A stretch of 64,000 nucleotides of DNA from Oikopleura dioica (lineage: Eukaryota > Animalia > Chordata). Under the pieces are notes generated by a model that was given only the letters and a program-made list of their open reading frames with translations, was not told the DNA's origin and made no database searches. The position numbers were made by a program, and so were the translations under genes. The stretch covers positions 14,705,208 to 14,769,207 of the forward strand of contig OU015568.1 in the NCBI GenBank assembly GCA_907165135.1, written 5' to 3'. Shown piece after piece: positions 16,676 through 43,977 of this stretch; the stretch's first letter is position 1; the number at the start of each line of letters is the position of its first letter.

Positions 16676-19217
16676 CAGTTGGTATCCATCTTAAGAGGCC
16701 TTTTGAGATGACAAGGGCTGAGAGAAAGTCCTCTTAAGTTGGAACATTTCGAGTCAATTTAGGAATACATATTTTAAAATTCTTTTCTCACTAATGTCGA
16801 AGCTAAGCAGCATTACTGAAGTCAAAATTTGGACATTTGATGGAAAAATTGATCATGATTATTGTTTCCAGAACAAGGCGCGCACTTATGTTTTTAATTT
16901 TAAGGACCCCCATCAAGAATCGCGAAAATAGGGCATCTTAGTGAAAGTTTTCTCTAAAACTATCTTAGCCAGACCCTTAATTTTAATTGCATCCTTTAGA
17001 TCGAACCCTCTACTGCAACCGTTCCCTTTAAGATGATCTCTCGATGCCAAATTTAAGGTTATACAGGCCGTTAAAGGTAAAGTTGCTTAGTGAACGTTTT
17101 TTGGGGTTTTCGTTGGGGTATACCCTTAATATTTTTCATGGTAAAGTTAACGCCCTTAGCTACGACCGTTTGCTTTTTGAGAGTTTTTGTCGACGAACTT
17201 AAGGAAGACAGCCCCTTTAAAATTTTATAAGTCGAATCTTAGTCGAATTTCCAGATTTTAATTTTCAGTAATTATTGCCTAAATTGCCCTGAATAACGTT
17301 TTTATACTCGTGTTTATGATAGAAATAGTTTTTATGGTTGGTATACCCTTAATTACCATTAAAAAATAGCGAACTAAAGATTTTTAGGAAATGGACAATG
17401 TTAATTTTCAATTTTTGAAGGCATTTTCTGCCAAAATTTTCTATAAGATCAAAAAATTTTCTGAATTAAAGTTGTTCCTCGTGGTCTAAACAACCCAAAA
17501 AGCAAAAAAATTTGAAAATTTTGACTTTTTCATCTTGATGGGGGTCCTTAACTTGTTCATTCCTCGAAAAATATTTTGCTGGAAACATGTCCGAAAAGAG
17601 AATTCGCATGACGATGGCCGAGAAAAAAGTATGCAGAGATTTTGGTGAAAGGTGCAAACAAAAGAAATGCTAAAAGGCTGTAAATGAGCTCTATCGAAAA
17701 GAGCATGGACAAGATATTCCGAAATGTACATTTACAAACCTTTATAACAAAAGGTTTACGATCCTGTCATCGAAAACGAAGCACAAATACCAACTCACGC
17801 AGAAGAAATCTGCATCAATGCAAAAGCTCGAAGAAAAAATCAAGCAACTATACCCGAAACGCCAATATAAAATGAGACTTCGTGGAGTCGCGAGATGGTT
17901 ACGAAAAATGATCGATGAAAACTTCCCCGATGACAAAGAGATACAGGATCTATGTATTTCCAAACGCTTTGTCAAAAGAATAATACGTGACTATGGAAGA
18001 AAAACCTCCAAGAAAACTGATGTTATATTTCTCAGTGAAGAAGAGAAAAATTTCGAAATTCAGCGTTTACGATCCTGTCGTTCGAATTATCCATTGAGGT
18101 GAGGATTTGATAATTTATTTTTGAAATCATTAAATTATAGTGCTATTCTGAACTGTGACAAGACAGGCGTCAGCCGAGAGATTGACACGCGAAATCGTAT
18201 CCTGCTTGGATCAGATGATCAACTCTCGAAAATTGCTCATCAAAAAGAGCGGTTTACATATATCCCGACAATCTCTGCGTTTGGGCCGCTAAAAGATTAC
18301 CGCCCCGCAATCATAATAAGAAATCAAGGAAGTAAATGGAAAGGCGCACCAAGAAAGCAGATAGAACGAGTGGCCAACCCAAACTTCGACAACTCCAAGC
18401 CCTCCTCCTCTAAAAATCTCAAATTTCATGAAATAGAATTTCGAGATTTTAAAGGTAAAAATTGAAAAAAACAAAGCTTATTAATTTTAAGATTTTCGAC
18501 TATACTGGAATTCCTCCGCCTGGTGTACAAGAGCGATATTTATTCTGGAGCTGACTCGTCTTTCGGCGTTTTTGAAAGAAAAAAATCCATCGCAGCGTTA
18601 TTTGATGTATATCGATAACTGTCCGGCTTACAAGCTTCTTCCACAATTTAAAAATCTGCTACTACCTCGATGATTTTATCGTCGATCACGATCATCTTAA
18701 TATCACAGAGGAAGAGCTCGTGAGAAAAGCCAACGAAATCTTCACTTACATGAATCCAGCAATCTTCAAGCGAAATTGGATCAATACTGGACTGATTAAA
18801 GAAGAAGAATACGAGGAGAATGTTGAAGACGTCGAGGGCTTGGACGTTTTCGAAAGTATCTTGGAGAAAGAAGACGAAGAAGAATTGATCGAGCATTTCC
18901 TGGCGCTTCAGATCGATGATACACAAGCTGCGACCCCGATGGATATTGAGGAAGAACCTCAAATTCCAGGTTCAGATGAAGCCGACATTGCAAAGCCATC
19001 GCCTTCAAAATGGCCAGAAAAGCAGTCAAAGATTTCGAGTTTCTTTACTGTAAAAAAAAAATGCTTAATGACTCACTGTTTGCCAAGATATTTCCCGAAA
19101 TTTAATAAAAATCATCAAGAAAGTCCTCTTAAGTTGGAACTTTTTAGGATGACAAAATTAGCCAAATTGACGCAAAAGTCCTCTTAAGTTAGGGCCTCTT
19201 AAGATGGGTAACCACTG
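16676..19217 (+). mobile_element. pogo/Tigger-like DNA transposon, decayed, ~2.5 kb
   Basis: TA|CAGTTGGTATCCATCTTAAGAGGCC at 16676 and its near inverse GGCCTCTTAAGATGGGTAACCACTG|TA ending 19217; internal repeats AAAGTCCTCTTAAGTT at both ends. Confidence 0.85.
17588..18960 (+). pseudogene. Broken pogo-type transposase (HTH, CENP-B-like HTH, DDE_1 remnants)
   Basis: MSEKRIRMT.., KLEEKIKQLYPKRQ..SKRFVKRI, ILNCDKTGVSRE (NxDETG motif), IFKRNWINTGLI then acidic tail; in-frame stops and missing centre. Confidence 0.7.
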
Positions 19218-29838: not shown

Positions 29839-31860
29839 ATGGAGATATCTACTCATCCAAAAGAACTCAGCGAAGAGAACGTTGAAAAATGGCTCGAAGA
29901 TTTCTTGCCGAAAATCAAGAGAGAAACAACGAGGAATGATAAGGATCGTCTACTTTTATCAGTCAACGAGATCGATTTCAGAACACAGAAGCATAAAGAA
30001 ATAAAAGATAAGGGAGGCAACTGGACGCATGTTTCTTTCAAGGACAAGTATGCATACATCTTCTACTTAGATAGATATGAAGAGGAAAAAAAGGAAAAAT
30101 TTATCCAAACACAGTTTCAGCGAGATATTATCATTTCAAATCGGGATCTTAGAAGAGTGAAAATCGCACGATCTGAGCTGAACGACGAACGAGGAGCATG
30201 GTTTTTGGAAAAATCGATATCAAAAGACCTGATTTCTTTTGGTGGGGAAGCGATCGTATTGAGCCAAAAAATCGGGGATCTACCAGTTGCGGTTAGAATT
30301 CAGGCAATATATTATGAAAAGATTAATTGATTAAATCTGATTTCAGGTCTATGATCCCGCATTGTTTTGCAATCAACGGTCTTTTTTTCAAAAAATATAC
30401 TATTCTAAAGGTAAATTTCTTGAAAAAAAAAAGAATTTATATATGAGTCAAGATTATCAAATTGCCGAGCATTTGAACCATGAAAAACTAATTCCCTTTC
30501 ATGAAAATGTCATCAAAAACTTTGTGAATATTGAGCTCTACGACGAATCATTTTCATCTTGTCTTGGCTCAATCACAATTATGGAGAAGGGTGATCAATG
30601 TTTGAGACCTTTGCTAAAAGAAAACTCATTGTCGCTAGAAGAGCGAAAAATCATTTCGATCGGAGTTAAAAAAGGGGCCGAATATCTTGCAAAAATTGGC
30701 ATTTATCACCGTGATCTGAAGCCCGAAAACATTATCCTGATAAAAGGGGTAGCTAAAATAATTGATTTTGGTGTTAGTGAAGAGCGATCTGGGCGGTCAA
30801 GTTTCCGAGAAATGGGCTATTCACGAGTTGGACTGAGAATAAGAAGTAGAAAAAACTTCTGTAAGCTTCCAATAAGACTATTCTAACTAAGTTTAATTTA
30901 GATTCTGGATCACCTGGATTTTGTACCTCGGAGCAACTTTTATCTGATTATGATTATGGTTACTTCGATGGTGAGAAAACCTTGATTACACTTATTCTAT
31001 GCGAATGGAAAACAGCTTGGACTTTATTGTATCAACCTATTGAAAGCGATGAAAGTTTGAAGATGTTCAGATCAAGCGATACATACATATTACTAAACGA
31101 CCCCAAGGAAGAAGAAATAATGAAATTAACTGCTATAATTAAAGTTACAGAAGCATCCGGCTATCTTTGCTTGAATGACGGAAACTTGACAAAATCGATT
31201 AATGTGCACTATCTGAAAAATTCCCTCACGAAAACGATGAAAGCAGGTTTTCGGAACTTGACGAAAAATGTTATGAAGCAGAAGGAATCAAATTTATGTG
31301 TGCCAATTGCGGTCACAAGTCTTATTCGATGGGCAATACAAAATGATGTTAAGGACGACCTCTCGCAATATCGTTTGGAAAGGTTGTCATTTGACAAAAT
31401 ATTTGTCATTTTGACAATGGTTCTTTACCCTCGAAGTTTGGCCGGACTAAACTTGAATCCGAATCTGAATGAAACTGATTATCAAAAGAATGAAATTGAA
31501 TTGCTTCTCAAAAGAGTTCAGTATCCAACATTTCTTTCAGATAGCGGATGGGATATTATATCACCGCCATTGTTTTCATGGAAATTTGGGTACAAAAAAA
31601 TTCTTCTTCATGAAAATGGTAGTATGTGGTAATTCGTCGGGGTCGCCCCGACAAATGAAAGATGAAATAACAGTCATTCGTCGGGGTCGATCCCGACACA
31701 TTGAAGATCAAAAATACACCAATTCGTCGGGGTCGAACAATTGAAATACGACGAATATGAGTATTTCTAAGCAGTGATTCGCCGGGTTTTATTTTAAAAA
31801 TCATTGAAAAAGGTCGAAGAGTCCTAGCGCCCTACTATTTGGCAGGAACTTATAGAATCT
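29839..31860 (+). CDS. Divergent protein kinase with an extra C-terminal domain, multi-exon
   Basis: FGGEAIV, PVAVRIQ, YHRDLKPENI, KIIDFG, GSPGFCTSEQ; followed by KQKESNLCVPIAV domain; 3' end uncertain. Confidence 0.7.
31632..31756. repeat. Three ~45-bp units starting ATTCGTCGGGGTCG, with hairpins, inside a kinase intron
   Basis: Units at 31632, 31676, 31722; GTCGGGG-TCG-CCCCGAC stem; outer ends ATTCGTCG..CGACGAAT inverted. Confidence 0.8.
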
Positions 31861-32022: not shown

Positions 32023-32932
32023 AAATTATAGAAAGTACTTTTAGCTAAAATCAGTCTTACTTTGGCAGCAGTAAAGAATATATAACATACCCCCCCCCCA
32101 AGTTTTCGCGCATTCCTCGGTACATTTTCCGTAATTTACTCTTCCTGATTTGTTCAAAACCCCCCAAATTTACGCCGCTTAACTTTTCCGCGCGCCCCGA
32201 AAATTTCTTCTCCTAACTTTTCTGCGTGCGCCCAAATTTACTCTCGCGGCGCTGATTCGCCTCATCGATTAATTTTCTGAGTGCGCAAAAGTCTTGTTTA
32301 GCTCGCTCCGGGCAATGAAAGGATTATCTTTTATAAAAAGCCAGATGCCTTAATAGGTCAGCCCTATTTTATGTTATTTTTGATAAAATTATTGTTTATT
32401 ATTTCAATGAAGTTAATAAATATTTGATAGAACGTTTTTCTAGTGCGAAAGATGAAAACGACATCTGTGGAGCAAAATCCTGACCTCAATATTTTAAGTT
32501 ACTCGAATGGTACGATTTTTATGTGTCCAAGCCACGAAAAAGTTCCAATTCTAGCGCCTCAAGTACCTGAAAACCAACTGTATTCGACTGCTTTTCTGTT
32601 AATACAACTTTGAAAACATGCACTAATAAATAAGTATTACTAGAAATAATGATATTCTGTCATAACTTAGTATTTGTTTGTTGATTGCAATTAACTGAAA
32701 GGAAAATTTTATTAAACAATGATTAAACATACAATGTCGCATTACTTTGAGGAAGTTTATCCATCATATTTACGTATGATTATCTCTTCCGGCTATTTTT
32801 GAACCGGTTGAGGCACACACGGGTGGCGCCCGAGCGCTCCGTCCCCGTCGGGCAATATCTTGCTCTTCAAATTTCGCTATAATTTTTAATAATTTATGAC
32901 TATTTATTTTTAAATTATGGCCTTTGTATTTA

Positions 32933-35900
32933 ATGGCAAGAAACCGGACAAAAAAAACCGGTAAAGAAAAGAAGCCGAGAAAGAAAAGAGGGCCCTACGG
33001 AAGTTCGTCGACTTTGAAAGAGAGAGCGGATGCATTGAAAATCATCGTCGCAAGAAAGGATGCAGGAGAATCGTAAGTTGTTAGATTTTTTAATATTTTC
33101 TTTAATCTTGCACTATTTTTACTAATGAAAGATTATCATAAAATGAAACTAAAGTCGTAATCGTAAGTTACAAATACCTGCCCAATGCCCTTTTAAACAA
33201 TCATCAAAAAATCACAAAAATTCCATCAAGGAAATTAATGGTGATGAGTCGACACCCTTAAATGCCTTCTTCAAAATAATCTTTATCGGTTTTTAACAAA
33301 ATTTATTAACAAAGTTTATAATGGAAACAGTTTCATAATCGATCTTTATATACGGCTTTCCTCGGCGCATGCTTTCCAAATCCGATTCTACAACTTCAAG
33401 GCGTTCTGATTAAGAATTGCGCGAATTTGTTTGATCCTCTGAGGCCGTAATGGTGGGCGCTTACGTGGACGAGTGGTGCTTGAAGGTTGTGTCGGAGGGG
33501 CCCCAGGGATCAAGATCGCCGTTAGAGAAGATCGTGTTCGAAGTAGCTTCCAGGTTGTCGGCCCAGTATTTGATTCTAAACCGATGTTAGGGACGAATAG
33601 TAAAGAAAACAAATATCCGCCGTTTCTATTGCGTGAAAATACACGACTCGCGGATTCTTTTAAAATTTCAAACTTTTACACTTTAGCTCAACATTGCGGA
33701 ATAGCTTCTTTGGATCATAGTCAAGCTCGTCCGCTGGTGGAAGGCTTGTTTTGCTTTTTATACAAGCTCGAAAATAAACAGGGAAAAGATTGTTTCTTTT
33801 AAAACTCTTTCCTGTCAGTTTTGTAGATTGGAAGAAGAGAGCTTAAGGAGGTGCTTTGTTAGAATTTCGTTAAGCTTTTACCAAAGGGGGAGGACTTACG
33901 GCTTATCTTCAAGTTCTTCTTCGAGCCCCTGCTCAAGAATTTGGCGCGGATTAGGTAACGATGATTTGGACTGGGGAATGAAGACTTTGTTTTTCAGGAA
34001 ATCTTGGAATCGCTCAGCGTATAAGCCAGGCCGCACCACTAGAATTGACGTTTTTTGAATTGATTTTTTTTATGAAAAGAAGACCTGAAATCCCGTCGCC
34101 ATTTGTGTAAAGATTTTTGATGAAATATTCCGTTTTCTTGAGAATTTTGTGGCACTGGAGGATGTCGATAATTCCACAATAAATATGAACTTGTGTGCCG
34201 TCGGGAAGTAGTGCAGGCAAGCCCTAGTTCTGGTCGACTTTGTGCTGAGAGAGTTGAAGATTCACTTGCGAGTCAGTGAAGACCTGCTCCATTGGCGACG
34301 AGTATAAGGCAGAGCGCTATAACGAAAATGAGGATGGGTCAATAAGAATGCTCAAATAAGTCCTCCGACTAATAAGGAACCCGGATTTCAAAGCCAAGGC
34401 ATGAAAAAGATTGAAATTCATAGATTAAATACAATCGGGGTTCTGATGGGCTGGAGGCTTTTTTTGAGCATTTTTATTCGTCCAAAAAGAACTGTCTGAA
34501 CGAAGTTTTAGGAAGATAGACTTACTTTGTGAAAGGATTTCTTGTTTCGTTTTCTTTTGACCAGAGAGCTCTTGCCTGAGTTGCCTCTGGAATTACTCGC
34601 GCTCAAGCTCATCGACTCCATACTAGCAATCTCCGTTGTAGAAGTTCTTGAGGATAATTTAGTTTCTCGCCTCGATTAATTGGTTTACCTTAATAGCAGC
34701 TCCAGAAGCAGTTTCGAGCTGGATGTCATTTGTTCCATTGGAAAGTGATTTCTCGTTGATGATGATTTCCATGTCTTCAGAGTCGGTCAACAGCGTCAAG
34801 TCTCATCCAAAAGTTATTAGTGTTGAAAATCTAATGGAGGATAGAGTGAATGTTTATCGGAAGAATTGATCCTACCTTGAACTTGGAGACAGATTTGAAT
34901 TTGTCAACGTGCTCTTTTGGGACTTGGGCGATTTCCAAAAGTCTTCGTAGTCAATCAAGGTACCTCGCTAAAGATTTTCATGCAGTGCTTGTTGTCTGGG
35001 TTGACATGTGGGCGAGGATGTTCATGTCGACGGTTGCGCCAAGATTGTCGATGCTGGAAAGGAAGATTTAAAAGTGACGATTAGTCCTGAGACTTAAACC
35101 AAATTCGCTTATTATTACTTTGCCCTGCTTTATGAGCTCTTCAATCAAACCAGAGTCGTAAAGGGCCATGTAGATGTCACCGTGGGTACCATCCTTGAGG
35201 TTGTAGAGATCCTTGGTGGGGACGGGGAGAAGGGTTTCTTTGTTGATTCGTTGGAAGCTGGTTGAACATTTTGATGTCGACCTGGCAGTTGTTGTTCTTT
35301 CGGAGGATCTTTCGGGTGTCTTCTTCGGTGTTGAAGGAGTTCATCAAAACCAAGGGGACGTTGGTCTCGTAGGTCTTGTTCAAGTGCTCGATTTGCTGAA
35401 CAGTCAAGTCCAAAAAGTTCAATCCAGATCTGACGGAAATGATCGACTTGGGACAAGTGAAGCCCGTGGAAGTACCGCGACCACCATTGAGCTTGATGAC
35501 GACCACTTTCGTTTTTCCAACGATCAGAGCCTTAAAATTACGTTAAGATATGTCCAGATTGGCAATGACCTTGGTATACACAAAGACAAAGTACGATATT
35601 GGTATGATCACAAGGACAAGACATACGCGAGCCTCGAAGTGCATGGAACTGAAGACAATCGACAAGTTTATAACGCTGGAAGAATTGATTTCGAGAAGTA
35701 GTAGCCTAATAACAATTCTCTAATTAATTCTTATAACTTTAGAACCATCCATTTCTCTCTTGCTGACAAAGAGGATGACATCATCGAAGAAGCTGAACTC
35801 ACGAACATTTCCCGCAGAGCCTTAGATGCTGACAATGGAAAAGTTTTACGTCCATTAGACTGTTTCAGAGCTAGAGTAAACAACCATGCAATTCAATATG

Positions 35901-38900
35901 GAAAAACCTGTCCTGAGGAGTACAAAAACAACAGTCGAACATATTCAAGTACTTATTTAGTTGGTAATAAGTGACCTACCTTTTAAATATTAACCAAAAT
36001 TAAGGCAATACCGGAAAAAACCGAAGAGGAAGTACTGTTTCATTAGTCAAACGACTTGGCTTTGGGATGGAAAAACAAACGGAGCAAAAGAAACCAATCG
36101 AATTTTCTAAACTTGCCGGTCATACAGCTGAACTTGTCGATAAAATTAATAATCGTAACCCGTCAGGAACGGCTTCATTTACTCTTATTGTAATGTTAAA
36201 AATACAAAATGAAACCTTTAAAAGATGTTATGAATATAGACGAGAAGAAAGTAGAGCTACAACGTGCACATTCCAAAGGATGGGGCTCCAAGAAGGTGAA
36301 TTGGAATAGAAAGCAGCTCGGAAACAAGCGTATCGGAGCGACGAGCCTTACTGCGATTGCTGCTGATGGTTCAAGAAGATGGTCAACAGGAAATTTTATA
36401 AATATTAATCTTAAAGATAAACCTTTTTAGTAGCTTCGGCAGTTCTAGTTTTCTCCAACCAGTCGTTGAATTCTTTTTTGTCGTCTTCAGCTTTTTGCAT
36501 CGCTCTCTCCGAGTAGTTGTTGATTTTGATCAGATTTTCCTTCTTCTCGGCTGCTTTTAACGACTTTTTCCATTCATACCGGATCATCTAAAATTTTTCT
36601 TTTATAAAATTTATAAAAAATATCAAGTAATCGTGGCGAATATCCCGAAGGAGCTCACTAAAGTCGCCAAAAAACAGCTGATCTACAAGACGGAGAATTT
36701 TTCATATTATTATATGAATATCGTTACGATGACGTGTGATGGCCCGAAGGATCTACATCTATACACAAGTAGCAAGGCTTCGATGACCAATGTGATTTGG
36801 ACGCACATGATCACGAGATGGAATGCTGAACTGGTGGAAGATAATCAGCACATTTTACTTTTATTGGGTTCTTTATCTTATTAAAAAAATAATGAATTAT
36901 TAAAACTATTTAAGACAACGCGTCCCAGCACGGCTTCTTGAAAGGAATGGACGCTGAGCATTCCAACATCGAAATGGCCTTTCTGCTGGCTAATTCCACT
37001 GATCTCTGTCAGGTAATTTTTCCGAAGATGAGTGGTAAGAGATTGAGTGAGCTTTGGTACTGACGTGAATGGAGCTAAATCTAAATGACAAATTGCCTAA
37101 TTTATGAAATGAACAATTTTCTAACTCGAAATTCAAAACTTCAATTTTAATTAATGGCTTCGAAAAATAGAAATTGGAAAAACCGGAGCTGAGATAAAAT
37201 GAGACTAAAACTGGAGCCAGCCGAAGGTACTGTATTCGAAGATAGGCCGGAAAAAAGGAAAATAGGTTTTGGAAAACAACAAGACGGATATTCATAAAGA
37301 GACGAGTAAATCTGTAAATGTTTGGTTATTTTTGTATGTATTAATTGTATCGTTCCTTTTTCAGCGATCGTGAGTTAGGCTTTATGGGGAATAATGAAGA
37401 TAGTGATGGGTTCAATAAATGTCTTAATTTGTCGATAAACAAGATTCAAGCGCACAAAGGAACAAAGGATTTTGTACAAAAATGCAAAGAGAGTAAGCTT
37501 TTAGTTGATAAAAGTTGCAAACAAATTGAAATTGAAAATTGGTAAAATAAGAAAAAGAATCTTCGCTTGAAAATGGAGCTGAATTCGAAGGTTTCCGAAG
37601 AATGGTCGTGCGGGCGGAGCAGCGGGTGGTCATCTCGAGCTTTTTTGAGAACGAGAGTGTTAACTTGTTGCAGCTTCGAGGATCTGGCAGTCGGAGCAGA
37701 CGAACTTCGGGTCGTCGCGGACGTCTTTCGGGTTAACGTTGAGGCAGAACATGTGGTACCATTTTGCGCAGCGCTCGAAATAGACCCGCTCGAATTTGTT
37801 GCCGTCTGGACGCTTGCATTGGCCTAAAAATGCGTGAAAACACAAAAACTTTATCCATCTTACCAGCAACGCAAGGTCCATCATCGTCAACATCCTCGTC
37901 GTCGTCCTCGTTTTCACTCGTTTCTTGTTGAAATTGAGTCCGAGCTCCTTTGTTTTTCTTCCGCGGATTCTGCGAGCGTCGTGGGAGATCGGAATCCTTA
38001 TCGCGTCGTTTACGATTCGGCGCCTTGTTTTAGAGATAAGAACATTTCAAATTTTCAAAAAAAAAACGCTTACGTCGCAGCTCATGGTGTAAGTTCCAGA
38101 AGTAGCATTTGGGAAAAGGAAGGAGTTGAACTAGAACTGAATCGCTGCAGCATCTGACTGGCCAGAAGAGCCGAACTGGAAGTCAACGATTGCATTGGGG
38201 CAGACGTTGAGGACTTCGAGGGTCGAACTTTTTCGCCTTCAATAGTGTTCAATTAAACCATATTTCATAGAAACTTACGATTATGACTAGGAAGTTGAGG
38301 GCGTAAAATGCATCCAGCAAATAGTCCAGCTAGGAATTCACTTGTACATCAATTGATGCTACCATGCTTGAGAACCTCTTTCAGGAACATTATCTAACCA
38401 AAGTTGTTCGTTGAATGATGAGATTTGGAGACTTACTAAATATTGAAAGTTGTTTTGCGATCTGAGGTCGAGCTTTTCAACGAGATTTTTACAAAGCCTC
38501 ACGTGGTCCACGATGACAAGGCAAATTTCAAAATGCGAACATAAGATTATTGGGAAGGGATTCGAATTGTGGAAGAGCAACAATACTTCTGCCACGGAAG
38601 CAACTGAACCTGGAAGTGTCTCGATCTAAAAGTAGTTTTCTGTAAATCCATGGTTGACGATGTGATTCAGTAAAACGTAGAAAGCAGGTTGAAATTCTGC
38701 TCCCTCATCGAAGCATCGTTTGAGGCATTCTTTTCTGAGAAAAAATGTTGAGGGTCTCGAATTTATCTTGAAAGTACCTAATTGATTGAGAACTAGAGAA
38801 GTCGCAGGATATAAAGGAAGCTTTTTTGAAGAATGAATGTGTAAGAGCAATGAATGGCATTCCAAACGCCGAGTATGTTCAGTTTCCGGAAAGAGTTATG

Positions 38901-41300
38901 TAATGATCAGGCCCGTTTTTCAACTTGAGGATGAGAATGAGATCGTCGACGGGATTCACGAACTTGTCTCCTTGCTTCACACCGAAGTTGAACTTTGAGA
39001 CGACTTCTTTATTGATGTTGAGATCGAATCCTATTGTATAAATTGAGGCATCTCCACTATCTGGCTGTAAGATTACCTGAAAATAACTTCAAATCATGGA
39101 TTTTCATTGCAATTTACCTTATTTGGATCGATCCACAAGCCGATGTTTGAATTAAAAGCTTCGTAGATGTCCTTGTCCGGCGAGAACACTTTCGAATCGA
39201 TGATCTGAAACTGCGCCAGCGTCTTTCCCGTATTCTGCGATCGCTCGTTCCAAAAATTTCAGCTTTCCAAAGTCGATTGCTTTGCTTGAAACAGCCTTTG
39301 CGGAATAAGCTCAATCTCGTGCTTGTCTAGCCAACTGGTAACTTCTTTGTACACGGAGTAGTAGATTTCTTTGTTGATCCTCTCGGTTCGGGCGATGAAA
39401 CTGGCAAGGATTGGTTTGTGGTCAGAAATGGTTATTGAAGGATGTGAAGAATAAGACAGACATTCTACGGATTGTTGTCATTGGCACATATTGATCGCTG
39501 GTTTCTGGGAAATCATCTTGAGTAGTTGAGCTCTCGAATTTTCTTCGTTGATTTTTTCTTTCTAAATAAATTTAAGCCGGCGGATCAGGGATATCACGCA
39601 ACTCTCGGCAAGTTGATGCGATCATGGGTGACAGAGCAGTACGCGAAAAATGATGAACCACCGAATCGAGCTGACGCAGTCCTCAAAGTCAATGAAGCGG
39701 TCTACTGTATTCACCCAGATTGCATCATTGGTTCTTATGCAAGAAGGAAAGTTAATTTTGCATTCAAAAGAATGTGAGAGCTATAACTTTTAGAAACAGT
39801 ACCTAGTGCATTTCTCCTGATCAGTTTTCTTTCGAAAGTTCTTTGTAAGAGCCGGCAGAGTTTGAACGCATATTCTTCTTGATACAGGCAGCACTCGTTC
39901 AATTTGATCCTAAAAATGAAATTAAAAGTAATAAAAAGTGAAATTAATGATAAAAGCGGACTTCTTCACGCTGATCTCGTCAACGAGGAGAAAAACCACG
40001 TCAATCGAGAACTTCCAAAGGCCCCAGAAGAAGAAAAGGCGCGAAAAAAACGAAGAGAAGGAAAAGAATCACTCTACAAGCTCTACAGCAAAGAAGTTTT
40101 GCAAGACTTTCTTTATAAGGACCCGATTATCGAAAGCGATCGCTTTTCTTATAAAACGCGAATAGAACTGAAGGTAATTAATTTGAGAGATATTTTCTGA
40201 TTTTAACTTTTTTTAGGAACCCGACATTGAATTGGAAGAGAGAGTGAAGAAGATTATTCAACTGAAAAACGCAGCAAAAGCTCGAAAATGCGCCGAAACG
40301 AAGAAAAAGAGGAAAATGGAAAGAAGTCAAACCAAGAAAAACCCGATCCCCGATGAGCCTGAAAAAGCACCAGAGGAGAAGGAAGAAGAAGTCGAATCCG
40401 AAGCCGAGGAACCAGAAAGAAAGATCCCAAGGGAGGAGCCACGGAACCGATATGTCCTGGGTCAATTGCTCACTCCAGCGGATTTCGAGAGCATCAGAGG
40501 CAATCGATGGTTTTTCAGCACAGCAGTCGACGCTTTTTTACCGTGTTCTTGAGCATGAACATCCTGAAATTGCGGCAATATCCGTGAATGTATCTGTAAG
40601 TCTATAAAATTTTTTAAAGAATAACTATTTTCTAAGATTTCTTTGGCCAGTCAATCACCGGAAATGGCGAAGAATTTTTTCAGTGGAAGATTGTTCGAGA
40701 CAAAGGAAAGAATCCTGATTCCAATCCATCAATCGTAAGTTAAATAAATATCTATTTTTATGCACTAATGGACTTCTTCCTAATTAAATTTCATTCTAGT
40801 GATCCTATTGGTCATTATTCTCTACTTCAACTCGATCTTGCTCTACAGGAATGTACCTACTTTGATAGCCTTGCAAATCTCTATGGAACTTCTCAAGAAA
40901 AATCCGATGCTAAAAAAAAGAAAAAAGAAATTTTGGACTTGCTTCTACCTTTCATTGGACAACGATTTGACGAACAATTTGCCCGTGGATTCATCAAAAA
41001 CACATTTCTGGACAAGAACATTGCGAGCCCGTCAACTGGAAAATGGCGATCGAAATGCGCAGAGCTACCGACAATGCAATTGGATGGACACTCCTGTGGT
41101 CCGTGGATTTGTCACTTTGCGGATTGTCTAGGAAAGCGATTTATAATTTACCTTGATTTCTTGTCGAATTCTTTTTTGATGAAAGCAGCAATGTTCTTTC
41201 GTTCCCGGAAAGTGCGTTTTTGGCCTTCGAGAGCTTGCTGAGAGTACTGATCCGTGAAGGTGTAGAAGCTGGATGTGTGGAACTCGCGGAAGATGAACGT
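32933..41300 (+). CDS. Intron-rich pogo (DDE_1) transposase fused to Ulp1/C48 SUMO-protease domain; near intact
   Basis: Exons 32933-33072, 35548-35697, 35743-35948, 36005-36166, 36225-36389, 36628-36867, 36915-37012, 39577-39746, 39957-40173, 40217-40589, 40637-40733, 40800-~41130 join in frame (one T-run slip near 40540): KRGPY..GES|YVQIGNDLGIHKDKVRYW (HTH), NIDEK, TSLTAIAADGS, KASMT..ILLLL|DNASQH, FLLANSTDLCQ|PADQG, SYAR|SGLL, PIHQS|DPIGHYSLL, FDSL, QLDGHSCG. Confidence 0.8.
33340..33760 (-). pseudogene. DPP7: Captured 3' fragment of DPP7/PRCP (peptidase S28)
   Basis: YWADNLEATSNTIFSNGDLDPW and SAHHYGLRGSN match S28 SNIIFSNG.LDPW..AHHLDLR; stops and frameshifts; DPP7 vs PRCP not resolved. 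Confidence 0.75.
33896..34625 (-). pseudogene. PIP5K1: Captured 3' fragment of type I PIP 5-kinase
   Basis: RSALYSSPME, GLPALLPDGTQVHIYCGIIDILQCHKILKKTE, then exon VRPGLYAERFQDFL (cf. LYIGIIDILQSY..HRPGFYAERF); internal TAG stop; introns retained. Confidence 0.85.
34625..35525 (-). pseudogene. UGP2: Captured central fragment of UDP-glucose pyrophosphorylase
   Basis: [47 protein letters not shown]..HGDIY (frameshift), IDNLGATVD, LEIAQVPKEHVDKFKSVSKFK, FNTNN, QLETASGAAIK; introns retained. Confidence 0.93.
36423..36587 (-). pseudogene. Orphan 165-nt antisense exon inside transposase intron 5
   Basis: TTTTAG|..|GTTTAT splice sites on minus strand; open 55-codon frame MIRYEWKKSLKAAEKKENLIKINNYSERAMQKAEDDKKEFNDWLEKTRTAEATKK. 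Confidence 0.5.
37640..38240 (-). pseudogene. Fragment ending in a PHD finger (resembles the KDM5 C-terminal PHD type)
   Basis: NKAPNRKRRDK..EDDDEDVDDDGPCVA|GQCKRPDGNKFERVYFERCAKWYHMFCLNV..FVCSDC; one Cys ligand replaced by F. Confidence 0.65.
38280..39480 (-). pseudogene. OCRL: Captured 3' half of OCRL/INPP5B (5-phosphatase end, ASH, RhoGAP-like)
   Basis: YSSHPSITISDHKP, LILILKLKNGPDHYITLSGN*TYSAFG, IETLPGSVASVAEVLLLF, LAGLFAGCILRP; stops and frameshifts; introns retained. Confidence 0.88.
39803..39909 (-). pseudogene. Orphan 107-nt antisense exon inside transposase intron 8
   Basis: TTTTAG|GATCAAATT..GCACTAG|GTACTG on minus strand; two open frames; unidentified. Confidence 0.35.
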
Positions 41301-41733
41301 CTTTTTTTTACAAATTTGCCGTCTAGATCTTTCAGTCAGATTAGACTTACTAAGCCAGTCTTTAATTGATTCAAAAATGAGCAGTTCTTGCTTTTATACC
41401 TCGCTGAATTGATAGCCCCGTTTTCTCGGAGATAGCGAGTGATGTTGTGCGAAGTCGCGTTTTGGGAGCTCTTCTTCAAGTGAATAAAGGGATTTGACAG
41501 GAAAAAGCTTAGAATGTTGATGTCATGCCACTAAAAAGGGTAAACAGACTAATAGATTAAGAGAAATGGCTGGAATATTTTTAGACAGTTGTTTGAGTTT
41601 TCAGAATATCACGCGGAAACATTCCTACAGAAAGACAAATCAATAACGAGCGAAATAAATATAGTGGTCGATGATTAACGGAGAATATCTATTGCGAGAC
41701 AAAGGTGCGGCAGAACGAGTCGTAAATAAAATA

Positions 41734-42121
41734 GGTGGTGGTCTAAACTTTGAAGTTCGTATGTGCGATAAGAACTTCGGGTGGCCTAAACTTTGATCGT
41801 TCCCATGTGTGGCTCTTTGAGAAAGTGGCCTAAACTTTGAATTTCCCCGGAGGCGCTTCTGCCATCGGTGACTAGAGCTCTGCCTGCTAAGGCCACTACG
41901 CTTTAATCAGACCAATTAGGTTTACGGTTTTCATTCAGGGTGATGACACATGGAACTAGTCAGAGCGCCTCAGGGGAAATTCAAAGTTTAGACCACTTTC
42001 ACACATGGAAAGAATCAAAGATTAGGCCACTTTCTCATAGAATCACACATGGGAAGAATCAAAGTTTAGGCCACACAAAGTTCTTATCGCACGTAAGAAC
42101 TTCAAAGTTTAGACCACCACC
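41734..42121. mobile_element. 388-bp MITE nested in the large element
   Basis: TA|GGTGGTGGTCTAAACTTTGAAGTTC .. GAACTTCAAAGTTTAGACCACCACC|TA; subterminal GTGG(T/C)CTAAACTTTGA repeats on both arms. Confidence 0.88.
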
Positions 42122-42169
42122 TATTTTAGTACAAGCAGCAGTGTTTTAAACAAGACTGAGTTTACATGA

Positions 42170-42735
42170 AGTATCCGGCATTTTTGTATAAATGATTGCT
42201 GAAGATGTGAAGAGCATTGCCCCATTCCTTATCCTCTGCAATCTTCCGCGTTTCGAGGGAATTCTCGCGCTTTGGAAACGAGTTTCGCCAGTTGTTTGCT
42301 TTTCGATGTTGCCACTCGACATGGGCGGGATGTCGATAGAAGACGGAGTAGTTTTTGCTCTTCAAAAGATTTGGGACGCAGAACCACCTCGCTCTATAAA
42401 CCAAAAGTAAAAGAAGACAAACGGAAATTTTAACTTACTGTTGCGGGTGGCGTAGAGGTACTTGAAGATCGAAGCACGTCAATATTGATCGCATTCATCT
42501 TGCGCGAAATATTCTCGACTGACATTGAACGCTTCGCGACTGGGAGAACGTCTCGCCGTGTGTTCAAGTTTCTACGAAGGATTAACAATGAAGGAATTGC
42601 AAAAATTGTCATTACTTTTTGGCGAATCTTTTGGGACGCTGATATTTCCGGGAATAGCTTGGTAAGCTCCAGACGCAGTGGACAATGCGCTCATCCATCG
42701 ACGTTGCTTCTCGTAGCTTTCCGCTGCAAGCAGGA
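42170..42735 (-). pseudogene. Captured fragment with a PH-domain-like C-terminal helix and Ser-rich region
   Basis: VLLAAESYEKQRRWMSALSTASG fits the PH terminal helix pattern (AES..E...W..AL); gene not identified. Confidence 0.45.
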
Positions 42736-43110
42736 CATTGTCAATGATTTTATACATTCGTAGTCGATAAATTCCATAGTTTAATTGTTAGATTAGCGGG
42801 ACATGAAGCTATCAATTAATTATTTAGCAAATGATCCTAGTTGGCGATTTTTACCGAGTTATTTTCCCGTGGAATCAAATGCGCAGTCTTGAACGGTGTC
42901 TGTTTGTCCTTTTAGCGTCCTCTCAAATTCGCCACTTTTAAATTCCTAAATCTAGATCGCTTTAAAATGGAGTAAAAGAGAGAAGTCGTTACTTGATTTG
43001 CGAGTCTTCGAAAGCAGTGACGAGTAGACTGAATTGAGGATGGAAAATGGTTCTGCTGAACAAGGTAGAATTCGTGGTGCGGCTGTCTGTATTCTTTTGT
43101 CGGCACAATA
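42735..43110 (-). pseudogene. PAFAH1B1: Captured fragment of LIS1 WD40 repeats
   Basis: RTIFHPQFSLLVTAFEDSQIK | [30 protein letters not shown] | ASCPANLTIKLW vs LIS1 [55 protein letters not shown]. Confidence 0.88.
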
Positions 43111-43977
43111 AAGTGAAGTGGAATCTGCTCTCTGTTCGTGTCCATTATTTCCTGAAACGGTTAATTGTTAAAAGGATAGTAAGCATCTGTTCACTTTTTT
43201 TGATTAATGAACAGAGTATTCTTTTAAAATCGCTAATTAGCTTCCAAAAGGATCTCTCCAGCCGACAGCACAGAGATATGCCAGAGTGGAGAAAAACGAT
43301 TGAAGAAAGGGTAAGAATCAATAATATTTACGCTATTCTGAATAACTTATTCAATTTCTTTTAAAGATTCTCAAATACTGCCGTTGATTTACCTGCTAAG
43401 AAAACTCGCGATTTTATGTCGATTCACGCCGCAAACTCGATGTACAGCTATTGATGACGTCATTACTCCACCACCATAAACCACTGAAAATCATAAATTT
43501 TACTGTCATTCTTATCGCTTCAATAAAACAGACAATATTTAAAAATTAAAAAATAACAATGTTTAAAAAGGTAAAGGTGTATCAAAGGTCAGTGTCAGAA
43601 TATATTCCAAAATGTAATTTCTCTAACTAAGTTCTGGACTTAAACTTCTACAATTGATCTTCCTCTGGAAAAAAAAAGACTGAAATCCCTTGGCTTAATT
43701 TGGCGCTATGATTGGATAACGCGCCCGTTAATGAATCATTAGCGTTGACGCGCATTTCAGCGGCGCGCGAGTAAATTTTGGCGCACGCGGAAAAGTTAGG
43801 AAAGAAATTTGGAAACGCGGGGAACGCGAGGAAGCGTAAATTTTGGGTGTTTTAGAAAAGTTAGGAAACGGAAACTTGGGCGAAATACCACGAATTGCGC
43901 GGAAATTTAGGGGGGGGGTATGTTAGTTAATAAAAATTTCGATATTTTTCGAAAAGGGATTTTCTGAAAATCATTAC

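Follow-up and report, generated by a model that had tools for sequence, protein, structure and literature searches.

Unrelated superfamilies of DNA transposons have acquired the Ulp1 (peptidase C48) domain again and again, independently in Mutator, CACTA, Ginger, Zisupton/KDZ and Crypton elements. In Ginger1, the transposase carries a fused C-terminal Ulp1 domain and is in some cases interrupted by introns (Bao, Kapitonov and Jurka, 2010; PMC2836005). In hydra, lancelet and plants, Mutator elements have Ulp1/C48 too (PMC2836005), and KI-MULEs carry it according to Hoen (2006) and van Leeuwen (2007), as these works are cited in PMC2836005. Oomycete CryptonF and CryptonS elements encode C48 either fused or as an extra protein (PMC3212892), and a survey of fungal cut-and-paste transposons gives C48 as a standard accessory domain (PMC5751038). 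Here we describe an 11.84-kb transposon, found in a 64,000-nt stretch of Oikopleura dioica DNA (hereafter, the window), in which a pogo/DDE_1-type transposase is followed by a Ulp1/SENP (C48) module.

Two large surveys of pogo elements mention no protease, Ulp1 or small ubiquitin-like modifier (SUMO) (PMC7386202; PMC7325037). A search of the literature for pogo/Tigger together with Ulp1, or for DDE_1 together with Peptidase_C48, likewise gave nothing relevant; the architectures in protein databases were not surveyed directly, and isolated predicted pogo proteins with C48 may exist. These results agree with a first-pass annotation of the window, which had read the locus as a pogo DD34D transposase fused in frame to a Ulp1 protease and had remarked that Ulp1 is not a standard part of pogo. 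Coordinates are positions in the window unless prefixed by G000 or L, and domain and homology tests on the transposase and the protease were run exon by exon.

A TA-flanked element carrying a transposase and a protease

The transposase and the protease lie, in that order and on the same strand, in one element with defined ends, bounded by terminal inverted repeats (TIRs) and flanked by TA; in-phase canonical introns connect the exons within each half, and the two halves can be joined in frame. The whole transposon spans 32083-43925 on the + strand, a length of 11.84 kb that counts the TA at either terminus, as delimited by a second copy whose identity ends at the TIRs. This is the one further copy of 32081-43926 in the genome; it lies on the minus strand at G000:C1:15504364-15516210 and, over 11.85 kb, differs from the first by no substitution and by nine one-base indels in homopolymers, two of them in exons. 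Such differences in homopolymer length are the usual signature of long-read assembly error; at the run at 32950, which is A8 in one copy and A7 in the other, the in-frame ATG survives in both. Identity between the copies stops exactly at the TIRs and their right flanks are unlike each other; on its left side, copy 2 borders a scaffold gap of 500 N. In the OKI2018_I69 assembly of O. dioica, scaffold gaps are of 500 bp (PMC8008620). The two long copies are very young.

The left (32083-32122) and right (43886-43925) TIRs form the imperfect inverted repeat I4, 40 nt long and 83% complementary, and subterminal inverted repeats (I2, I6, I8 and I9) are found inside the element ends. Besides the two long copies, at least 15 elements resembling miniature inverted-repeat transposable elements (MITEs) measure 0.45-2.4 kb and are 75-96% identical to the long element over 220 nt at the left end and 220 nt at the right; examples are G000:C2:6332360-6333043, C2:10416837-10417590, C5:8646901-8647606, C2:5758594-5759302, C1:8138556-8139368 and C2:3225005-3225844. 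All seven insertions inspected read TA-ACATACCCC...GGGGTATGT-TA within mutually unrelated flanks. At these seven occupied sites, where a target-site duplication (TSD) and the element end look alike, we read the TA on both sides as the TA duplication of the IS630-Tc1-mariner (ITm)/pogo group. TIRs of 40 nt and seven TA-flanked insertions are what would be expected of a pogo element.

A search of the genome placed neither the DDE exons nor the C48 exons anywhere outside the two long copies and, as a consequence, the 11.8-kb element is the only visible source of transposase for the MITE family. Within this family of O. dioica DNA transposons, which is bounded by TIRs and targets TA, it is the only coding ('master') member.

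Some further repeats were seen in and around these elements. Two left ends of the MITE family lie 5 kb apart on C5 (13903081 and 13908133), each without a right end to match it. A 141-nt repeat, 96% identical between 31616-31756 and G000:C1:15503854-15503993, lies ~330-370 nt outside the element near both copies; it was discarded as a pair of larger termini, being on opposite sides of the two copies and having no partner, and is probably an unrelated small repeat. In the 3' arm, 41727-41840 and 42015-42128 form a 114-nt inverted repeat, 91% complementary and 174 nt apart, which is built of ~44-nt direct repeats and may be a nested small element.

Transposase and protease exons

The transposase gene begins in exon 1 (32933-33072, + strand, as are all the exons below), which holds the start codon, a basic stretch and the first half of a putative psq/CENP-B-type helix-turn-helix (HTH), and ends at a GTAAGT donor at 33073. 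This HTH, psq-like by our reading of exons 1 and 2, is split by intron 1 (33073-35547; GT-AG, in phase), which is filled with antisense host fragments; its second half (YVQIGNDLGIHKDKVRYW...) lies in exon 2 (35548-35664, with an uncertain 3' end). The first catalytic Asp (GAC 36239-36241, in MNIDE) is found in the exon at 36225-36368, which aligns with positions 219-250 of a local hidden Markov model (HMM) in collinear order. A GA-AG intron just upstream of this exon (36167-36224) is one plausible solution and is proposed tentatively.

The second catalytic Asp codon is itself split (36867/36915-16) by a 47-nt GT-AG intron at 36868-36914: the exon at 36628-36867 (KASMT...HILLLL) ends with its first base and the exon at 36915-37012 (D-NASQH...FLLANSTDLCQ) provides the remaining two, so that joining them restores HILLLL-D-NASQH. 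A GT-AG intron of 2.56 kb (37013-39576), with antisense host fragments inside, then parts ...STDLCQ from PADQGY in phase 0, and its removal restores LCQ-PADQG. Exon A (39577-39746) runs from the third catalytic Asp (Q|PADQGY, GAT 39583-39585) to ...SYAR. A hand count over two exons, resting on these two canonical GT-AG junctions, gives 34 residues from the second to the third Asp, within the ~30-36 residues that separate the last two Asp of the pogo D, D, D.

Two local HMMs point in the same direction. The first, made of eight O. dioica DDE_1 open reading frames (ORFs) and scored against all stop-free six-frame pieces of the window, ranks 36561-36881 second (E-value 0.007, model positions 83-141) and 36914-37060 third (E-value 0.13, positions 141-172), that is, two adjacent pieces matched collinearly at contiguous model positions; the sole better match is an unrelated pogo relic at 18491-18670 (E-value 3e-6). 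With the second and narrower HMM, the three catalytic exons (36198-36425, 36560-36880 and 36914-37060) are the top three of 308 pieces, again collinear. In a protein atlas, 26 of the 30 neighbours of the exon at 36633-36863 are DDE_1 (score 0.95). We take the transposase as DDE_1 because both local HMMs, the atlas neighbours and the splice geometry agree; the combined lines of evidence are convincing, yet they include no match at a curated threshold. Other searches contributed little: when every piece of the element was compared pairwise by phmmer to the remaining DDE_1 ORFs of the genome, the expected exons gave no match; tblastn of the other O. dioica DDE_1 ORFs against the window returned only the unrelated pogo relic (~17900-18650), a word search meant to widen the profile, in which the query was a different pogo ORF of O. 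dioica, gave three matches only, and a metagenome scan with the DDE exon found nothing. The relic itself, a pogo/DDE_1 remnant unrelated to the element, extends over 17900-18670 when the tblastn matches and the best local-HMM match are put together.

Taken together, the gene of about 12 exons is predicted to encode a pogo/DDE_1-type transposase, with a putative psq-like HTH followed by D, D, D. The DD34D-type transposase of the first-pass annotation is in this way sustained by the HMMs, the atlas, the motifs rebuilt over in-phase introns and the 34 residues between the last two Asp, and the peptides that it quoted were all recovered on the + strand: KASMT and HILLLL (36561-36881), DNASQH and FLLAN (36914-37060), PADQGY...SYAR (39526-39774), SGLL (39883-40197), LTPADFESIRGNRWF (40217-40549), PIHQS (40625-40735) and DPIGHYSLL, FDSL and QLDGHSCG (40744-41238). 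KASMT (against the usual GWMT) and FLLAN (against F-P-x-N), which it read as lesions, are in our view divergences that we cannot call demonstrable lesions.

The protease half follows in four exons separated by three in-phase GT-AG introns, which are 43, 41 and 65 nt long. Exon B (39957-40173) opens with SGLL... and encodes a Lys/Glu-rich linker; exon C (40217-40595) continues the linker and reaches the start of C48 (LTPADFESIRGNRWF...); exon D (40637-40734; ...NFFSGRL...ILIPIHQ) encodes the middle of the domain; and exon E (40800-41241, with the stop at 41239-41241) its catalytic part. Exon E matches Peptidase_C48 (PF02902) with 26.0 bits against a gathering cut-off of 20.7 (E-value 9.9e-6, HMM positions 95-182 of 217), and 25 of its 30 neighbours in the protein atlas are C48 clusters. 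The catalytic residues map to His 40813-15, Asp 40864-66, Gln 41077-79 and Cys 41095-97, which is the His-Asp-Cys triad with the oxyanion Gln of a C48 peptidase. An alignment to a set of four further C48 ORFs from O. dioica shows no variation in the His and Cys columns and places the Asp and the Gln in register. The Ulp1/C48 module and its four residues, as originally claimed, are thus confirmed by a Pfam match above cut-off and by alignment.

A T6 run at 40534-40539, in exon C, had been taken for a slip at ~40540. The run is real in the window and shifts the frame in this copy only; in copy 2 the site is T5, the frame is open (L031:4690-5076, minus strand) through ...AFYRVLEHEHPEIAAISVNVS, and exon C continues ...RWFFSTAVDAFYRVLEHEHPEIAAISVNVS to a GTAAGT donor. 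In the window copy, T6 looks like a homopolymer assembly difference, and the suggestion of a lesion falls with the open frame of copy 2.

C48 sequences occur in other O. dioica loci as well. In another repeated element (L038, G000:C1:9125200-9135199; L039, G000:C2:2756300-2766299; C3:2668188; C5:4907205; C2:5053236; C1:1230010), a C48 ORF (Pfam E-value 1.5e-7) stands behind same-strand ORFs of 351, 156, 176 and 180 aa that have no Pfam match. At L040:3554-5350 (G000:C3:1041053-1042849), an uninterrupted ORF of 599 aa carries a C-terminal C48 (E-value 4e-7) and no other clear domain, and a 307-aa relative of it is found at L041:4301-5221.

One protein or two

Between the two halves lies the junction at 39747-39956 (+ strand), 210 nt that could be an in-frame GA-AG intron or a spacer between cistrons. 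The SYAR|SGLL join was first described as a GT-AG splice; the intron that produces it, 39747-39956, is GA-AG, and the canonical in-frame alternative is GT(39751)...AG(39891), of 141 nt. In this regard, non-canonical introns amount to 11% in the OKI2018_I69 assembly, where the median intron is 49 bp (PMC8008620), and further upstream, too, the exons of this gene are most simply joined with a GA-AG intron. The GC content is 26% at 39747-39777 and 22% at 39892-39956, compared to 14-23% in the short introns and 40-52% in the exons, and its increase starts exactly at 39957; base composition favours an intron at the junction. In addition, a different pogo ORF of O. dioica (L001) has ...CWRK-TGL as the counterpart of ...SYAR + SGLL, equally far downstream of QPLD. 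A captured fragment (39809-39887) lies inside the junction. We see about even chances that the transposase and C48 halves are spliced into one transposase-protease polypeptide, the likeliest of the readings considered here. Of the in-frame fusion first proposed, the common strand, the single element and the possible in-frame join stand, whereas the single protein is called into question by the stop at 39775, the ATG at 39916 and the lack of a transcript.

The observations that weigh against a functional fusion concern the gene model and its junction on one side, and the protease on the other. As for the first, exon A read straight on ends ...SYARRKVNFAFKRM at a stop (39775-39777), the downstream frame is open from 39883 with an in-frame ATG at 39916 that could start a separate protease, and chance alone is likely to provide a gap of this kind with an in-frame donor/acceptor pair. 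Further upstream, the exon junctions between ~35664 and 36225 are tentative, and Pfam, run on each DDE and HTH exon singly with E-values up to 10, gave no match; of the DDE_1 plus Peptidase_C48 architecture that the first-pass annotation would have searched for, Pfam recovers the C48 part on exon E. A HMMER search of exon E against 1.8 billion representative proteins retrieved one repetitive junk protein only, which means that no annotated or transcript-derived protein contains exon E, and a metagenome scan with this exon was empty; neither the exon E protein search nor the metagenome scans gave a transcript, an annotated protein or a relative spanning the locus. A weak match to exon E elsewhere in the genome (L037) was set aside as due to chance. 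Finally, with only two identical copies, selection cannot be gauged.

The best-surviving alternative, which we consider rather unlikely yet serious, is that of two proteins: the transposase would end at the stop at 39775 and the protease would be made separately, either starting at the ATG at 39916 or, within an operon, as a downstream cistron that receives a spliced leader at the AG of 39891 or 39956. Operons and trans-splicing are common in O. dioica, and the sequence has elements for either route: stop and ATG are each in the right frame, a good acceptor-like site (ttcttcttgatacaggcag) lies 24 nt upstream of the ATG, and an AATAAA is found at 39929-39934. Such a layout would resemble the Ulp1 ORFs that accompany the transposase in some MULE (Mutator-like element), CACTA and Crypton elements, and CryptonS elements do encode C48 as an additional protein (PMC3212892). 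However, the 13 codons that follow the ATG are in intron-like sequence of 22% GC, an exon B that starts at 39957 contains no ATG, and a transposase ending at 39775 would drop the G-L part of the pogo C-terminal motif, which the splice restores.

With regard to the protease, a spliced transposase-protease would carry a domain that is incomplete in several respects. To the eye, exons C and D resemble the N-terminal half of C48; Pfam does not recognise them, and a local C48 HMM made from host SENP exons, which ranks exons D and E first, D being the best, is not significant on any of these exons. The Pfam match of exon E stops at position 182 of 217 and leaves the C-terminal 35 model positions unmatched, so that a complete C48 domain, with the N-terminal SUMO-binding half and the C-terminal helices, was not recovered; a structure predicted for exon E with AlphaFold2 from a five-row alignment was uninformative (predicted local distance difference test, pLDDT, 53.8). 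Moreover, an antisense fragment of a dynein light chain (LC8) gene (41148-41199, minus strand), which had escaped the first-pass annotation, overlaps the last ~31 codons of the protease ORF. The fragment is 92% identical to an exon at L022, whose ORF is Dynein_light (E-value 1.3e-16), and the minus strand of the window is itself recognised there as Dynein_light (E-value 0.008). The predicted ORF tail from 41148 is antisense captured LC8 sequence, a chimeric end, and a Pfam match that ends at 182 of 217 fits it.

These observations bear on a further alternative, in which the protease is present as dead cargo, its C-terminal end destroyed by the antisense LC8 acquisition, and the element moves by its transposase alone. 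The early end of the Pfam match, the Dynein_light sequence in the ORF from 41148, the unrecognised exons C and D and a divergence so high that phmmer gives no relative in 1.8 billion proteins all speak for it. The retention of His, Asp, Gln and Cys and of three in-phase canonical introns speaks against it, as do the youth of the two copies, too great for decay since capture, and the fact that another multi-copy O. dioica C48 ORF likewise matches only to HMM position 180; on balance we regard a dead protease as improbable. Even less tenable, and highly improbable in our judgement, is a dead transposase relic copied by segmental duplication, assembly artefact or movement in trans, with no need for a functional gene model: copy 2 does abut the 500-N scaffold gap, the per-exon DDE evidence is weak and KASMT and FLLAN have other residues in place of a conserved Trp and a conserved Pro, respectively, but identity ends exactly at the TIRs with different right flanks, the TA-flanked MITE relatives make up a mobile family, no other transposase of this kind was found in the genome, and splice sites and phases are intact.

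Captured fragments, possible function and known systems

The non-coding parts of the element contain many antisense pieces of host genes, LC8 among them. A UDPGP match lies on the minus strand in intron 1 (35177-35506, E-value 2.8e-37) and a PHD finger on the minus strand in the 2.56-kb intron (37660-37917, E-value 2e-6), where 37020-38054 is 93-98% identical to a locus on C4 and does not have the intron of that locus. The captured pieces with located sources are antisense and 84-98% identical to host loci, and the introns of the sources are gone; four of them (36419-36618, 37020-38054, 39809-39887 and 41218-41559) are contiguous here and broken by 115-580 nt at their sources (L026/L027, L028, L023 and L020, respectively). 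They have the intron-less look of copies made from spliced RNA, and every one of them is antisense to the transposase gene.

The C48 module, on the contrary, is on the sense strand, has three small in-phase introns and keeps its catalytic residues, and no source for it was found elsewhere in the genome at the DNA or protein level. Its orientation, its introns and the absence of a source locus rule out that it is one more captured host piece. Since it is unlike the captured pieces on every count, we take it to be old cargo of this lineage rather than a recent capture.

These features allow us to propose a model in which the transposase would bind the TIRs and the subterminal repeats, cutting and pasting the long element and its MITEs. 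The gene would run through a single intron, GA-AG or else the GT-AG alternative, and then by way of a basic/acidic linker into a Ulp1/SENP (C48) domain that has diverged, giving a single transposase-protease polypeptide comparable to Ginger1 transposases. Basic clusters in the linker may serve nuclear import, and the C48 domain, if active, could strip SUMO, during transposition, from factors of chromatin silencing or of repair or from the transposase; an anti-silencing role of the protease is, at this point, purely conjectural. The model in full, namely an active chordate pogo-type transposon that makes a single bifunctional transposase-deSUMOylase directed at silencing that depends on SUMO or at double-strand-break repair factors where excision or insertion takes place, seems to us doubtful. 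To our knowledge, O. dioica lacks canonical non-homologous end joining.

A pogo-type case would extend the convergence on Ulp1 to the most widespread group of cut-and-paste elements and, if true, the transposase-deSUMOylase would be the first ITm/pogo example of Ulp1 acquisition. The setting is favourable for pursuing it, with two identical copies, MITEs as excision substrates and a compact, culturable chordate with a small genome and existing RNA-seq data. Should the two parts be separate genes, or the protease be dead, the claim of a fusion falls and the element is still an unusual pogo, rich in introns and in captured fragments.

When compared to pogo/Tigger, the O. dioica element shares the TA flanks, the TIRs with subterminal repeats and the associated MITEs, an N-terminal HTH that reads as psq/CENP-B-like, and a DDE_1-like core with a GWMT-type motif, LLLDNxxxH, QPxDxG and 34 residues between the last two Asp. 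It differs in its ~12 exons, with kilobase introns stuffed with antisense pieces of host genes, in a divergence so marked that there is no per-exon Pfam match and no relative by sequence, and in the C48 module downstream. KI-MULEs and oomycete Cryptons have in common with it a C48 peptidase as transposon cargo, but theirs goes with a MULE DDE or a tyrosine recombinase, in plants, hydra, lancelet and oomycetes. With Ginger1 it shares a cut-and-paste transposase with a C-terminal Ulp1/C48; the Ginger1 core, however, is a Gypsy-integrase-like DDE with 4-bp TSDs, whereas the O. dioica element has DDE_1 with TA, and the Ginger1 fusion is found in many copies while that of O. dioica rests on one predicted splice. 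The pairing of pogo with C48 extends an established theme to a further superfamily and is not novel in kind.

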